Shown here: one piece after another, positions 16,406 through 44,770 of the stretch
Position numbering within the stretch: the first letter of the stretch is position 1
Layout: each line of letters begins with the position of its first letter
Assembly: GCF_964204865.1 (NCBI RefSeq)
Contig: NC_135254.1
Location: forward strand, 16,182,001-16,246,000
Direction: 5' to 3'
From: Styela clava
Lineage: Eukaryota
DNA: 64,000 nucleotides
The notes under the pieces: model-generated
The model's input: only the letters and a program-made list of their open reading frames with translations
Told to the model about the DNA's origin: nothing
Database searches by the model: none
Position numbers and translations under genes: made by a program

Positions 16406-18046
16406 TTAAAATTTATAAGGTACTTTTCTTCTCTTATCTTGTGAAATATGACCATTATGGCCTGACAATGGCTTAGGTCGTTTCATGGGAGTTAAAGAGC
16501 CTGTGTCATTAACAACAGATTTAGGTTGTAGCTTCATCTTTGCACACCATAATTTGAAACAATTAAGACTCGCATCAACCTTGTCATCACTTATGCAATA
16601 AATTTGAATCTCAGATTCTTCGAATACATCGGGTAGCATAGGTGAAACATCTTCCTTACGAATATGATATGGTTTCCCAGGATCTGATTTTGAGAAAAAC
16701 TTGAATGAATCTATCGGATTTTTATCATGCATACCATAGCTGAACTTTGTGGTATTTGCAATCAAGTCACCTTTCATCAGTATTCCAGATGTATCGAATG
16801 CAGCAATTTGATCGCATACTTCGTCTAATTTCATAGGCGAGATAGGCCTTGCTGCCCCAATGATTTGATATAGTTGCCTTCTTAAAATTCTTTCCAAAAT
16901 TTTGCGAGCCGGTTCCAACTGTTTTTCATTTGAGTGTAAAATTTTATCAAAAATATTATCATTCAGTTTCGTAAAAGCAACTGGATCATTAACACATTCA
17001 GAGACCGAGCATTCTACTCCACCGGTACCAACATATTTTATATACGGCTCCGCGAGAACCATAGCGTCACAAATCATGTGGTCAATAGCATTGGCAACTC
17101 TATGTTGGTATGCCCTGCGGTGTAAAACACTTCGAGTGTGAAACATCTCATATAGATTGTAACTTTCTTTGTCTCTTGCACAAATTTGTAACCGTTCACC
17201 TTCTACTTTTAAAACTTTGATGAACTGCATAAATCGATTGTGATCAAAACTATTACGAATTCCAAGATGATAACAATCTCTAGCAAAATAATCCCATTTA
17301 TCGACATCTACCTTGTTTCTCTCATTTGATACGATTTCATAAAGAAAACTTTTATCTTCACCACGACCTTTATATGGCCAAATACCATTTGTTACAGATC
17401 TATCCACACCAGCAATCATCTCTTTCACAAATGTTACATCGGTTTGAGTTATGCCATACATATCAAATTGAGATTCTAAACAATTTGCTTTGATTAAATG
17501 ATCGATCATCATGCATGAACCTTTTTCATGCGTCCATGTCGAGTTCGGTTTAACACTAGGTAAAAAACGCCCATCAAACATGTGAGAAAATGGGCCATGA
17601 CCTAGATCATGACACAATCCCGCCATTTCAACACATAGAACATCCGTATTAGTAATATTCAAACTTCTCTGATTCTTTTGAAGTAATCTTGCTAACTTAC
17701 CAGCTAAGTGTGAAGTGCCAATACAGTGTTCAAAACGATTGTGTGAACCACCAGGATAGACAAAATAAGTAGCGCCAAGTTGTTTCACATTGCGAAGGCG
17801 TTGAAACTGGGGGGTGTCAATAATTTTCACTAAAAGTGGGTGCAGCATAATATGACCGTGAATAGGGTCATTAAAAACTTTGTATACAACTGAATCGCTG
17901 ACAGAATCATCATCATCATTATTTACAAAGTGAACACTGACTTGACTCTCTTGACTTAAAGTAATGTCATCATCATCATCCAAAATATTACTTAATAAAT
18001 CATTGCCACCATTTCCAACAGTTTCAAATAGTTGATTATCTTCCAT
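16406..18046 (-). CDS. SAMHD1: Deoxynucleoside triphosphate triphosphohydrolase SAMHD1 (HD domain, no SAM domain), single coding exon, 546 aa
   Basis: Uninterrupted ORF with KVFNDPIHGHI, IIDTPQFQRLR, HNRFEH, LCHDLGHGPFSH, WTHE, DVDKWDYFARD, ICARDKE, HRRAYQH and GMHDKNPI motifs. A splice acceptor lies at 18115-18116 in the 5' UTR. Confidence 0.97.
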   Translation of the reverse strand: MEDNQLFETVGNGGNDLLSNILDDDDDITLSQESQVSVHFVNNDDDDSVSDSVVYKVFNDPIHGHIMLHPLLVKIIDTPQFQRLRNVKQLGATYFVYPGGSHNRFEHCIGTSHLAGKLARLLQKNQRSLNITNTDVLCVEMAGLCHDLGHGPFSHMFDGRFLPSVKPNSTWTHEKGSCMMIDHLIKANCLESQFDMYGITQTDVTFVKEMIAGVDRSVTNGIWPYKGRGEDKSFLYEIVSNERNKVDVDKWDYFARDCYHLGIRNSFDHNRFMQFIKVLKVEGERLQICARDKESYNLYEMFHTRSVLHRRAYQHRVANAIDHMICDAMVLAEPYIKYVGTGGVECSVSECVNDPVAFTKLNDNIFDKILHSNEKQLEPARKILERILRRQLYQIIGAARPISPMKLDEVCDQIAAFDTSGILMKGDLIANTTKFSYGMHDKNPIDSFKFFSKSDPGKPYHIRKEDVSPMLPDVFEESEIQIYCISDDKVDASLNCFKLWCAKMKLQPKSVVNDTGSLTPMKRPKPLSGHNGHISQDKRRKVPYKF

Positions 18047-38755: not shown

Positions 38756-39599
38756 CATTAATCTGTGAACTTTCATCTATGATTCAAATTTACGATACTC
38801 ATTCACCTTTAAAATTCATTGCGAATGAAGCTTAATCTCAAGATATACAGCATTCTACAGTGTTAACGTTAGAGAGAGATTTATTATTTATCAGCCAGAA
38901 TATATAAAACAGTAGCCTAATACCCGTAGCCTAATAGAAATATTACAACCATAACATGCGGGAGCGATACGACCACGCGGTCAACGAAGTCTGTTTCCTC
39001 AAGTTCCAATTATAAGTTCATACAATGATTGATTGGTTCACACTAGAATATAGTTATTATAAACTGTCTATATTTTCTGAAGATATTTGAACAAAATATG
39101 CATGTTTTCAAACAAATGTACAGGTTGAATATGGACTATAATTTTTATAGAAGTGAAAACTTTCCCGAAAATCTCTACTGTCTGACCATTGATACCTGAC
39201 TGTGCGTGTGTCTAGAATTAGATGCATTATAGCGAAGACCGAAATAAATTGTCTATCTTTCGTTTCGAACAAATGCTTCTGGTCATATAGCAAAGAGTCG
39301 TTATAAGGATCTATTTCTATCAGATTTTAATGTTGTTGGATTTAACTTCGAGCTATGATAACAGTATGGTCACTGTCTATCCTATCACAACAGGCACTAT
39401 TTGAATGTGTCTCCCGGGGAGAACGACGTTGAAAATAGGGTAATTTCATCCGAATTCGGGCTCTTTACAGTAGTTATTTGACTTTCGTGGATATATATTT
39501 GAGCATCGATCAGTGCTCTCGTTTTATATATTCTTAATATAAATGAACGTAGTTTTAAATTTTATTACAGTATTAGTCCAATATTTTGCTATATATATT

Positions 39600-42500
39600 A
39601 TGAGTGCTATAAAAACGAATCAGCAACGCCGTCTCACGTCGTCACTCATGGAATTCTTAAAAGAAGGTGTGCTAACTGATTTTGAGGTCAAGGTATCCGG
39701 AAAATCTTTCAGTGTACATCGCAATGTTTTGGCGGCAAGTTCTGACTACTTTAAAGGCATGTTCTTAAGTAAAATGAAAGAAGTTTCCGCCGGTTACGTC
39801 GACATTAAGAACGTCGACGCCGATGCAATGGAACAATGCATTAAATTTATGTACGAGGGCTGCGCCGACATAACCTTGAAGACGGTGCAAAATATTTTGA
39901 TCGCAGCGGACTTGTTACAATTGGATGGATTGAAAACACTCTGCTTTCAATATTTGCCAACTCATCTTTCACCAAATACATGCATCTTCGTTATCAAGTT
40001 AGCAAATATGTTTAGCCATAGCGATATCAAAAAAAAAAGCTGAGGGCGAGATTATGAAAGACTTCGAAAGCGTTACTCGCTCTGACGATTTTCCATCAAT
40101 CACATTGCCAGATCTCTTGCGTTATATTAAAATATCTACAGGAAATCAACGGATAAATCACCGTCTATCTTGGAATGCAATGTTGAGATGGGCAACAAAC
40201 AAAAAATTGAATTCAGACGACGTTTGCGAACTTATCCAAGGCATCGGGTTAACAAACTTTCCGTTTGATTTTTTACTAGACATTGTATTCCCAGACCAAT
40301 TCTTGAAGGATAATGACGCTGCCAAAAACGTCGTGATCACTTCTCGGTTTTCCGTTGCTAGCAAGGTACAGAACAACATTAAAGTCGATAACTGTTTTGC
40401 ACTAAAGAATTTATGCGAAGATTACAAAATAAACAATTATGATGAAATTAAAATCATAATTGATAAATTTTTCGAAGAAAATTTTGAGCAAATATTTGAC
40501 AAAACAGAATTTTGTCACATTTCCAGAGAAGACATATTTAGACTAGTCAAATCTGAAAAATTGAAATGTTCTTCGGAAGAAGTGAAATGGAACGCCGTGA
40601 TAAAATGGATCAAACACGATAGTAAAGTAAGGAAAAGGGAGTTTGAAGAACTTTTCGCTGTCATCAACCTTTCAAAATTTTCCCGGATGTTTCTTGAAAA
40701 AGTAGGACGTGAAAACTTGGTATTACAATCAGAAAAATGTATTCTTCTAGTTTTTCATGAGTACGATTTAAGGTTGCAAAGCATTTGTGGAAATGAAGAG
40801 AGTAAGTATCAAAATAGCTATAGGAATAGCTTGTGGAATTCAATTGTAAGTCTAACGCAGGGATAGGCGTTTTCTAAACTTTACTCTTCGTATTTCGTGT
40901 AAAATAATATACTTAGTGCGCGTTCAGCATATGCTCCGATATCTTTGGTGCCTTCGGTTAATTACTTAATATTTGCGGATTCCACACGAGTGGATTATGG
41001 ACTGAACTTGGGGTGCCGTGAAGGCTTATCCGGCGGTCTAAAAATAATACACTCTTATCTAAAAGTAATCATTCAGATTTTTATTTTCAGCAACACGAAG
41101 TGCAGCAAAATATCAGCCAATTGGCAATATTGTTATTGAAAAATTAGTATTTGAATCACTACAAGGCTGCAAGAAAAGCGAATGTATTGAGATTGAATAT
41201 TCTTTCCCCAGCGGTACATTAAACGTAAGAAACATTTAGGTAAAAGTGTTGCTAGAGACTTTTTTTGGTTTTATATGCCTATATCATCAATGCCTTTACC
41301 ACCTATGTTGCAAATGAATTATGCGTCATTTCCTCGACCCATGACCCCTAAAAATTTTTTTGGTATACTTTGCCACTACAAATTTCGTATGGGTATTTTG
41401 AGAGCATTTACTCGAGTTAGTTAGATTTCCTTATTTTAGTTCCATTACGAGTTCGGGGACTGCCTGTGTTAGCCAAGTGAATATACCCCCTGCACATAAC
41501 TTTCAATCCCTTTACACAACTTGATGTTAGGAGGCGAACAAAATTAGTTACATACATACTGGAACACACACTTCTGGCCCTAATTTGTGTCTACTGTAAC
41601 TAAACTAAAACTCTTCGTACTGACCATCCAGCTAATTGGTTTCTAACTGAAGTTCCCACGCAGAAGTAAATTCTGGTAAATACCAAGCAAAACCAGGACA
41701 ACGATCAACTTTATCAGCGTAAAAATCGTGTCTGAGCCATCCAGGTGCTCAAGCTAAACGATCTGAGCGGCAGCCGAATTTTCAACTCTTACATCCTCGT
41801 TACTTTACTGCTTGCTGGTCATTACCACCAAAATAAACAAAGAAGTCGATTATTGGGGAAATATTCATTGGCGGCAATCCCACATTTTCATTGCGACTTT
41901 TGTGCCTAATGTGGTTCAGGTAAAGAAATTTATTTGCGAGGATGGTCGATACGCTGCGCCTATCGCACGGCTGTTGCTAGACTCATTATACAGAATCGAC
42001 CGCATTTGCGTTGGGCAGTGATATATATAGTAAATTTAAATGAAATTGAATCGCATATTATATTTAGGGGATTTCTTATCTAAGCAAAGAATTCACTGCT
42101 TATTTGCCCAACGATCCCACTGGAGAACATCTTGCCGCTCTTTTAAGACAAGCCTTTATAAATGGCCTGACTTTTAAAATTGATGAAGTCGCAAGCGGAC
42201 AGGGAAGAATTGTCTGGAATGATATACCACATAAAACAAGACAAGATGGAGGACCAGAAAAGTCAGTACTTACTTTGTTATGTCCATTTATCGCCGTATT
42301 ATTAATTAAAAGTATCGTTAACCCGTCTTGTTGTCAATTAAGCCAAGGGACGTAAGACAAACGCAAAATTCGATAACGTAATGTACCTCAAAATATTGAG
42401 TGATCGTTGGCTGATAAATACTTTAATCAGACATCCTCTTGTCAAACTTCTTTGTATGTTTATAAATTGAATTTGTGCTGTATATATATGAAGTCAAATG

Positions 42501-42977
42501 CAAGCTCTTAATAAATTCTTTTCAATTTTTAAGATTGATAGTAGGTCTACTGATAATTGGGTACTCCCGAAGTATGTGAACCAAGATGGCGGACACCGGA
42601 ATGTAGTATGTGCCAGGTTAGGGTTAGGGTATAATTTCAGGTACAAATACTACGGGAGTCACTTGGCTAGTCCCCGAACTTGTAATAGAGTTAAAATAAG
42701 GAAAATTGGAATAAAATTATGGCCTAACCTGGTACACATACTACGTTCCGGTGTCCGACATCTTGGTTCACATACTTCGGGAGTACCGGTAATTGTTATT
42801 ATCAGACTAAAAAAACTTTCCGGTGCTTTCAATATTGTCTCATTGACTGTTTTTTTCTAGTTCAAAGTATTTTCAATATTGCAATATATATTATTATATT
42901 TTGACAGCAATGGATACCCAGATCCAAATTATCTCCCTCTTCTTCGTCAAACTTTGGAAGCGAAAGGAATAAAATGA
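39600..42977 (+). CDS. BTB/POZ-BACK-BACK protein fused to a Deltex C-terminal (DTC) domain; +1 frameshift at an A10 run; about 532 aa if corrected
   Basis: join(39600..40801,41091..41224,42068..42261,42908..42977). BTB: LTDFEVKVSGKSFSVHRNVLAASSDYFKGMF...AADLLQL. Two BACK-like repeats (LSPNTCI...DFESV...WNAMLRW and IKVDNCF...ENFEQI...SEEVKWNAVIKW). DTC: YQPIG...ESLQG...IEYSFPSG...TAYLPNDPTG...AF...[26 protein letters not shown]...LEAKGIK*. Splice phases 1, 0, 2 match. Removing one A from 40029-40038 restores KKKAEGEIMKDF. Confidence 0.85.
41420..41580. mobile_element. MITE fragment (same family as 30562-30773)
   Basis: Shares TTTTAGTTC.ATTACGAGTTC.GGGAC...GTGTTAGCCAAGTGAATATAC...TTTACACAACTTGATGT with 30610-30760. 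Confidence 0.7.
42560..42787. mobile_element. Long-TIR (foldback) MITE containing TTAGGG repeats
   Basis: About 65-bp inverted repeats GGTACTCCCGAAGTATGTGAACCAAGATG.CGGACACCGGAA.GTAGTATGTG...GGTTAGG. A second copy lies at 61501-61738. Confidence 0.85.
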
Positions 42978-44770
42978 GCATCCTGTAAAATGTGTACCAT
43001 GCTTTTTGAATTGTTGCCATTAGTCAGCTAAAATAGCATGCAGTGCCTTTATTGAATTAAGTTAATATTTGATTCAAAAATTAGAAAATTTTCGAGATGG
43101 TTTTAACTTCGTGCTAAAATAATTAGCAAATTCCATTTGGACTGTTTGATTTTTATGCGAATTAATGCTATAAAAATGCCATGCAGACAATATTGGTATA
43201 TATACTGTGTTGCGTCAAAAATCGTTAATGCCACTTTTGTGAAATTTTTTCTTAAATTTCTTCCTAATAATTAAATCGATTCATTTTTCTCAAAGACTAT
43301 TTGAAATATTTAATATTGACATCATTCGAGTTTTGAATTCTTCATTATTATTCGATACATATATGAGCTGTTTTCATATCGTATCTCCGAACAAAACACC
43401 CGGACTAAACAAACATCTTTTGGGTTTGTCTTAGCTTACTTATTTAGTTATCACTTGAATGAGATGTGGGCCTGGTTTGACCAGTAAATACCAGGCTGAT
43501 CTTGAGATTGGCATATTTGATTCGTTTTTAAATTTATTATTTTGACTTGATACATTTATGCTTTTTGCAAATTTAGAATAATTGTATTTCAGAACCAAGT
43601 GCAATCGAATGTGTAACATGCAATGACTTACTTATTTTTACAACCTTTGCCCAAATTCTTGCAGCTACGCGCAGTTATAAATATTTATATATTCATCCAA
43701 TCCATGTGAATTCGCATTTTTAGTCTCCGTTTACTTATTACTTACCTAATATACATTTGCATCACCGATGCTTCTTGCATTTTAAAAGAAACGATATTTT
43801 GTTGCATACACAGTATGCTTAATTAACAGGAAGAAACAATATGTACTAATTGAATGTAAATACGAAAATTACAATGCGTGTTAAATAATTGCTAAATTGT
43901 GGATTTTTGTTTTGGTGATGATAAAGACAAACAAATTTGCGCGGATTAAGTGTTTATCAGTTACAGCTTTAATTAAGAATTTTTTTTAAGAAAGACTATT
44001 GTTTGCTTGTGATTGTTTCTTTGCAAAGATTATTATAAAAATAAAATTTTTAATTTAAACTGTATAAGTTCTAAATGATTTTGCACAACTACGGTGAATT
44101 AGAATCTATAAATAAAATTATTCGTATTTAAGGTAACGTTATACACATATACTGTCATTTGAATAATTTAAATACACAGTCAATGGATTTTATGGGCAAG
44201 TATTGTATGTACTTGCTTGACTCTACGTCTGACATGGGCAAATTACGGCCCGCGGGCCAAATCCGAGGCCTATTGTTTTCCACTATGACTTTTGTAACAC
44301 TGAAATATTGTTCATAAAATGTAACTTTTTACGTCACACTTAGGTGGCCCGCCAGTGTAGGTGGGCAAATTGTTTGGTCCCCGGTCCGAAAACGTTGCCC
44401 ACCCCTTCAGGCTACATGATATGTTTGCAAAAAATTGGAAATCAAATCGAAAATTAGTATACACGTTCTGATTCCGTGATGACGAAAACTCTATTATTGG
44501 CTTTTCGGAGGAGTACATTTGAAAACACTCACGACATCACACTTCAAAACAATCAGAAAACAACACACTATATCCAGACAGGTTGATTCAACGCTGGGCA
44601 TACATATTCATGGACAATTTTGACGCGTCGTTTTTGTATGAATCACATGCTTTTTGCCACCAAACTGTCGCGCCATCTTGAATTTGAAAGTTCTTCGATT
44701 TAATAGGAAAAAACCGATAGTTGATTCAAGTAAAGGGAGACGTACATAGATTCGATACCACATAAATTTT

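Follow-up and report, generated by a model that had tools for sequence, protein, structure and literature searches.

A BTB-BACK-BACK-DTC gene and its family

We analysed a 64,000-nucleotide stretch of the Styela clava genome, referred to below as the window (NCBI RefSeq assembly GCF_964204865.1, contig NC_135254.1, positions 16,182,001 to 16,246,000 of the forward strand). Between positions 39600 and 42977 of the window lies a four-exon gene on the + strand that joins a BTB-BACK-BACK exon to a Deltex C-terminal domain (DTC) lacking the RING finger of the Deltex ubiquitin ligases. The gene is a divergent member of a family found in tandem arrays in S. clava. It is single-copy in the assembly and isolated at 16.2 Mb of C5, and its BACK part is only about 44% identical to that of any paralogue.

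Exon 1 (39600..40801) begins with the ATG and encodes a BTB domain at about 39648-39965 (Pfam PF00651, E value 5.7e-25, profile positions 2-109 of 110, in the frame from ATG 39600), followed by a first BACK/3-box region, a second BACK at about 40432-40701 and a short linker that ends in phase 1 before GTAAGT. The Pfam BACK match (E 3.3e-20) falls in two stretches of the 258 codons read from 40027. The DTC (PF18102) is spread over exons 2 to 4. Its start is encoded in exon 2 (41091..41224; profile 4-37), which ends in YSFPSGTLN, is weak in Pfam on its own (E 0.11) and matches exon 2 of the paralogue P0070 in tblastn with 41% identity (E 4e-4). Exon 3 (42068..42261) holds the core of the domain with AYLP and WNDIPHKT (profile 46-110; Pfam DTC E 1.4e-11) and matches the DTC of human DTX3L (3pg6) in phmmer with an E value of 1.4e-6. 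The end of the domain, GYPDPNYL...AKGIK, is encoded in exon 4 (42908..42977; profile 114-133; Pfam E 6.5e-4), which closes with the stop codon TGA at 42975-42977. The three introns, located at 40802..41090 (289 nt, GTAAGT...TTTTCAG), 41225..42067 (843 nt, GTAAGA...TAG) and 42262..42907 (646 nt, GTCAGT...CAG), are in phases 1, 0 and 2; all are bounded by GT..AG with polypyrimidine tracts, and the reading frame is continuous over each of them.

A first-pass annotation of this locus, made by a model from the sequence alone, had described a BTB-BACK-BACK exon spliced in phase to three DTC exons. The domains, the intron phases and the GT..AG borders agree with that description, but exon 1 is not one open frame in the assembly because of an A10 homopolymer that is discussed below. 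The DTC motifs AYLP, GYPDPNYL and a further eight-residue motif are present in the downstream exons, and the TGA does close the domain, but the residues before it are AKGIK and not the AKGI that had been reported. An in-frame TAG in intron 1 is present as described, at 40864-40866, 63 nt into the intron. The absence of RING and Kelch was also borne out, as Pfam detected neither in the window pieces and open reading frames (ORFs) of the locus nor in the paralogue P0001.

The paralogues, which the first-pass annotation had left uncounted, amount to at least 50 four-exon BTB-BACK-BACK-DTC genes in S. clava. In the S. clava genome (377 Mb), 52 matches were obtained with a DTC profile and 148 with the BACK piece, and at 33 places a BTB-BACK exon is followed on the same strand by a DTC exon at a distance of 0.5-12.5 kb. 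The BTB-BACK exons of these 33 pairs have open frames of about 370-520 amino acids (aa), with a few that are shorter or interrupted by stops. Most of the pairs are located in tandem arrays at C5 2.6-4.8 Mb and C19 1.45-1.66 Mb, and a further array of about 20 copies lies at C6 21.8-22.5 Mb, where the RefSeq models carry the DTC. Like the window gene, the RefSeq models P0001 and P0055 consist of four exons when placed on the genome.

Database relatives of one paralogue's exon 1 are almost exclusively S. clava proteins (62 of 64), and 45 of the 64 combine PF18102 with BACK, most of them also with BTB, according to precomputed Pfam annotations; they bear names such as 'uncharacterized protein LOC...'. 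The DTC-plus-linker protein P0061 gave 850 matches among 1.84 billion representative proteins. When the best 150 of these were screened with a profile derived from proven BTB rows, BTB and DTC occurred together in only four, namely the S. clava proteins P0031, P0055 and P0077, and P0068. The latter is a complete 546-aa BTB-BACK-DTC protein encoded on a 2175-nt Logan contig. Because its identity to every S. clava copy is 42% or less, we assign it to another organism, and because its whole ORF fits on such a short contig, the contig is most likely an mRNA.

The first-pass annotation knew of no described protein with this architecture and had named wide cataloguing as what would speak against its novelty. 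Wide cataloguing is partly the case, given the dozens of RefSeq models with BTB, BACK and DTC, but no paper was found: literature searches on BTB with DTC, on RING-less Deltex or DTC proteins and on Styela with Deltex returned nothing relevant. The architecture is catalogued in sequence databases and, as far as searched, undescribed in the literature.

Further RING-less DTC arrangements were observed beside this family. Several S. clava RefSeq models (P0065, P0070 and P0081) combine a RING-less DTC with a protein kinase domain. Within the arrays, 14 DTC exon-3 matches, including the one at C5:3898579 (L008), have no BTB-BACK exon within 13 kb upstream, and the exon-3 peptides of P0065 and L008 are identical. 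The kinase-linked DTC sets may be real genes, alternative first exons or chimeric models. In the hemichordate Saccoglossus kowalevskii, the 837-aa protein P0089 carries a macro domain and a canonical DTC of the IHHKT type; no RING was found in it by Pfam or by a RING pattern, which makes it another RING-less DTC architecture.

Two introns of the window gene contain repeats. Intron 3 holds an element resembling a miniature inverted-repeat transposable element at 42560-42787, with 53-nt terminal inverted repeats that are 96% complementary and separated by 122 nt; its depth of 10^4-10^5 in every sequencing run indicates a very high copy number. Another very high-copy repeat lies in intron 2 at about 41426-41560 (depth 10^3-10^5 in all runs), and its first 36 nt match, in inverted orientation, the interior of the intron-3 element. 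Approximately 22 kb upstream of the BTB-DTC gene, on the - strand, an intronless 546-aa ORF at 16406-18046 has a Pfam match to the HD domain (E 6.5e-9). What we take to be SAMHD1-type HD-domain motifs are visible by eye, which makes the ORF a candidate SAMHD1-like deoxynucleoside triphosphate hydrolase.

The DTC pocket and its origin

The ligand site of the Deltex DTC is defined by published structures and mutants, given here in DTX2 numbering (DTX1 is one less). Arg535 and Ser566/567 bind the pyrophosphate; at the adenine, Trp578 and His594 provide stacking and Thr585 a bond to N1 (PMC7442474, PMC7500938, PMC7615817). His582 bonds the ribose and, as a catalytic pair with Glu608, activates the 3' hydroxyl (PMC7615817). 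Mutation of His581/582, His593/594 or Glu608 in DTX1 or DTX2 cripples binding or the ubiquitylation of ADP-ribose or NAD+ (PMC7442474, PMC7500938, PMC7615817).

Five of these seven ADP-ribose-binding or catalytic positions, including the His-Glu pair, are lost in the DTC of the window gene. Arg535 is replaced by Phe, Ser566/567 by Val in a loop that is two residues shorter, the catalytic His582 by Pro (WNDIPHKT), His594 by Asn (NNGYPD) and the catalytic Glu608 by Thr (LRQTL), the last position having been located by the ungapped spacing from GYPDPNYL to the C-terminal Gly-Ile and not by structure. Trp578 and Thr585 are kept. The same replacements occur in the arrays and are conserved across the family, with Pro (sometimes Ser) at the His582 position and Ala at the Glu608 position, and because they are conserved family-wide, they point to a new pocket and not to decay. 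An AlphaFold model of the paralogue P0061, computed with 46 family sequences, has a predicted local distance difference test score above 90 across the DTC, and its top Foldseek match is the DTC of DTX3L (3pg6; template modelling score 0.83, root-mean-square deviation 2.0 Å). The family DTC keeps the Deltex fold but, judged by its residues, is catalytically dead.

These replacements bear directly on the mechanism put forward in the first-pass annotation, a 'Deltex-like ligase rebuilt on a cullin scaffold', in which the DTC would still bind ADP-ribose, NAD+ or the 3' ends of nucleic acids, the RING would be supplied in trans by CUL3-RBX1, and non-protein acceptors would be ubiquitylated as they are by Deltex. 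Such a mechanism could draw on the retained fold, on the retained equivalents of the adenine-contacting Trp578 and Thr585, and on a BTB-BACK module that would bring in the ubiquitin-conjugating enzyme (E2) bound to RBX1. Against it stand the loss of both catalytic residues (His582 to Pro, and Glu608 to Thr or, in the arrays, Ala), of Arg535 and the pyrophosphate-binding serines together with the shortening of their loop, and of the second stacking residue, as well as the crippled DTX1 and DTX2 mutants at the same sites and the family-wide conservation that suggests a new pocket. Because the site residues are lost, ubiquitylation of ADP-ribose or nucleic acid in trans is unlikely; the proposal is not supported, and we consider it quite unlikely as a whole.

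The catalytic losses have a counterpart among the Deltex genes of S. clava. The species has at least three RING-type Deltex genes, two of which are canonical, with IHHKT (C19:4.66 Mb and C1:1.36 Mb). The third, at C1:11.0856-11.0879 Mb (L061:7650-7961 and L002:504-2200), has its RING split by an intron. Its DTC reads IPHKT (His582 to Pro) and LRQTL (Glu608 to Thr), which are the same two catalytic losses as in the window gene, and has introns at the same DTC positions. It differs from the window gene in that the RING and the Arg535 equivalent are retained and the residue at position His594 is aromatic. By these residues this Deltex should be unable to ubiquitylate ADP-ribose, and its gene is likely the donor type of the RING-less DTCs.

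In a tree of exon-3 peptides, all RING-less DTCs, including those of the window gene, the kinase-linked models and P0068, form one clade with support of 100/99. The C1:11.0856-11.0879 gene falls on the RING-bearing side of this split, where it is the earliest branch under midpoint rooting. The simplest history is that a Deltex paralogue lost the catalytic pair first and that other genes later took up its DTC exons. Exon 2 has a new 5' edge, because the counterpart exon of the RING gene also holds the end of the RING.

Diversification of the DTC and proposed docking on CUL3

Within each array, the BTB columns have almost no entropy and the BACK columns little, and three spots in the DTC have high values. 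The ratio of non-synonymous to synonymous substitution rates (dN/dS), used here as a descriptive pairwise estimate from pairs that are not independent, is 0.22 for the BTB, 0.33 for the first BACK, 0.23 for the second BACK and 0.81 for the linker among 8 copies of the C5 array. Among 16 copies of the same array, the ten codons after YLP in DTC exon 3 reach 7.1 (dN 0.41, dS 0.058), and the remainder of exon 3 has a dN/dS of 0.97. The peak of a sliding window falls exactly on this loop, and none of 5000 random 10-codon sets reaches the proportion of non-synonymous differences found in the loop, in which one Gly and one Cys are nonetheless invariant. The low ratios of the BTB and BACK domains indicate purifying selection on both in the C5 array. 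The variable loop begins three residues downstream of the site once occupied by the pyrophosphate-binding Arg, so it probably lies at the edge of the old pocket. The variable DTC and the conserved BTB-BACK of the paralogues support the view, already taken in the first-pass annotation, that the DTC is the substrate-recognition module.

The best relatives of the window BTB in the PDB are KLHL22, KBTBD2, KLHL3 and SPOP. Its phi-x-E motif is MKE, which aligns with LKE of KLHL22 and LSE of KBTBD2; we take this motif to be the BTB contact to CUL3, as in the SPOP and KLHL-CUL3 structures. Because a conserved docking end combined with a diversifying far end is the signature of a substrate receptor, we favour a receptor of cullin-3-RING ubiquitin ligases (CRL3). 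With a probability of roughly 0.6, the intact proteins of this family act as substrate receptors of CUL3, in which the DTC is a non-catalytic head that is diversifying. The domains and exon structure, the frameshift, the size of the family, the lost residues, the fold and the pattern of selection are observations, whereas CUL3 binding, target recruitment and the kind of target are inferred.

The proposed receptor would work as follows. The BTB dimer, together with the first BACK helices, would dock on CUL3-RBX1, and the DTC at the tip of the doubled BACK stalk would serve as a non-catalytic binding head. A target bound by the DTC would be brought near the RBX1-bound E2 and undergo ordinary lysine ubiquitylation. 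The DTC itself would derive from a Deltex paralogue in which the His-Glu pair was already missing, and the one loop beside the former ligand pocket would be diversifying in the arrays, as in families that track fast-changing targets; pathogen or non-self proteins are possible targets.

The same domains could be put to a different use. BTB-BACK might only oligomerise the protein, without CUL3, and the dead DTC might regulate genuine Deltex or PARP partners or serve as a decoy for them. Binding to CUL3 is absent from many BTB proteins, a domain without catalytic activity can act by competition, and the same DTC occurs on kinase domains, which need no cullin. However, once BACK is counted, the BTB is closest to the KLHL, KBTBD and SPOP adaptors and not to the BTBs of transcription factors, the phi-x-E motif and the 3-box-forming BACK are kept, and a hypervariable loop with a dN/dS far above 1 would be unexpected in a decoy, so we regard this use as very unlikely.

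The proposed receptors share features with three known systems. As in the BTB-BACK-Kelch adaptors (KLHL/KBTBD), an N-terminal BTB with phi-x-E is followed by BACK and by a C-terminal recognition domain; unlike them, the window family has no Kelch propeller, its BACK is doubled, and the DTC is not a known CRL3 recognition domain. With the Deltex E3 ligases (DTX1-4 and DTX3L, in which RING is followed by DTC), the family shares the DTC fold and the YLP, W..HKT and GYPDP motifs, and its introns match those of two S. clava RING-DTC genes. It lacks the RING in cis, the WWE and the KH of those ligases; other residues stand in place of the catalytic His and Glu and of three ligand-binding residues, and one loop is hypervariable in the arrays. 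A parallel in mode of evolution is offered by the MATH-BTB and F-box genes of nematodes, which are lineage-specific, positively selected families of cullin-RING ligase adaptors. There, too, dozens of tandem copies keep a conserved cullin-docking part and concentrate amino-acid change in the target-binding domain, whereas the window family carries a DTC in place of MATH and resides in a tunicate. What emerges is a BTB-BACK adaptor with an unprecedented recognition domain, present as unnamed RefSeq models.

The reference allele and the meaning of the family

An A10 homopolymer at 40029..40038 (+ strand) introduces a one-base frame shift within the BTB/BACK junction of the window gene. The frame from ATG 39600 ends at a TGA at 40041-40043, directly 3' of the A10, and BACK resumes one frame over. 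With A10, the four exons total 1600 nt; with A9, they total 1599 nt, or 533 codons that are open from ATG 39600 to TGA 42977, and the product would have 532 aa. BACK is in frame with BTB only in the A9 variant and is one frame off in the assembly. The A10 allele yields at best a 147-aa BTB stub. A10 is the form in the assembly, in a contig of X1 DNA at a depth of 10.9, and in two X10 Hi-C reads. One A fewer is found in an X5 contig covering 39780-40104, which comes from another sample and is guessed to be RNA; it is otherwise identical over 325 nt. No second copy or haplotig with A9 was found, and the assembly has one DNA copy of the gene. On our reading, the reference individual carries a null allele and an intact allele exists elsewhere; the A9 form, which is in frame, appears to be carried or expressed by at least one further individual.

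In runs X5 and X6 there is partial cover of exon 1, of exon 3 and of exon 4 together with its 3' flank, the latter by an X6 contig spanning 42917-43091, and the depth over exon 3 is 26 in X5 and 8 in X6. The introns are uncovered except for the two high-copy repeats. Cover of exons without cover of introns fits spliced RNA. A separate X5 contig of 1256 nt (depth 31.6) matches the locus over only 538 nt (40100-40637, 3 mismatches), and its remaining 718 nt fit nothing in 39500-43100, although the gene is single-copy in the assembly; this contig could stem from a diverged allele or a structural variant, or it could be chimeric.

Several points weigh against the reading of the family as diversifying CUL3 receptors, most of them at the window locus itself. 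A9 is seen in a single contig, at depth 3, and all DNA evidence is A10, so the window copy may simply be dead. No RefSeq protein for the locus was found with the 258-aa BACK piece among proteins of 142-451 aa, a result of little weight because a full-length model would lie outside that range. X5 and X6 are only guessed to be RNA, and neither covers exon 2 or the last 165 nt of exon 1. The joint between 40801 and 41091, whose confirmation by RNA-seq or RT-PCR the first-pass annotation had proposed, was seen in no read, and the joints listed are driven by repeats. Beyond the locus, the hypervariable loop was picked after the alignment had been viewed, and pairwise dN/dS among tandem copies is blurred by likely gene conversion, with dS differing between exon 1 and exon 3.

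Taken at their strongest, the points on the A run would make the window copy a plain pseudogene fixed in the species, with the A9 contig explained by a slip in assembly or transcription and no functional product from this locus, irrespective of what its paralogues make. A10 in the assembly, the X1 contig and the Hi-C reads, the lack of a short RefSeq protein and the frequent shedding of copies by large tandem families all agree with this. Against it, the four exons are open apart from the extra A, every intron has canonical splice sites, and none of the ten DTC residues that are invariant in the family has changed. The A9 contig has no other difference over its 325 nt, and the exon-only cover in X5 and X6 suggests transcription. 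We judge a fixed pseudogene to be unlikely.

The unseen first joint, together with the in-frame TAG 63 nt into intron 1, could also mean that a BTB-BACK-BACK gene and a small DTC gene are two genes wrongly joined, by eye and by the gene predictors alike. This is extremely unlikely, since the phases agree at all three introns, a BTB-BACK exon precedes a DTC exon in this way at no fewer than 33 places, and P0068 has all domains in one ORF on its 2175-nt contig. Moreover, exon 2 lacks a start codon context, and in the paralogues this exon begins in the linker just upstream of the DTC.

We thus return to the substrate-receptor reading and to what it would mean for the DTC. In the literature searched, the DTC appears solely alongside a RING, within Deltex ligases, and its role there is to bind ADP-ribose and to activate it as a substrate of ubiquitylation. 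In this family it has lost that chemistry, is free of a RING and sits on a cullin-3 adaptor (on kinases in neighbouring genes), in dozens of copies with one diversified loop. As a matter of annotation, the RefSeq models labelled 'uncharacterized' or 'kelch-like' are one coherent family, and the reference allele of the window locus is frameshifted. If the proteins dock on CUL3, the DTC would be a new recognition domain in the CRL3 repertoire and the family a natural experiment on which other ligands the DTC pocket can hold. More tentatively, and at somewhat less than even odds, S. clava and at least one other organism may have turned a dead DTC into a plug-in, hypervariable recognition cassette, with more than 50 on CUL3 adaptors and more on kinases, forming a diversified repertoire of target-specific degradation or signalling receptors, possibly against non-self or pathogen proteins; if true, this would be a new function for the DTC fold.

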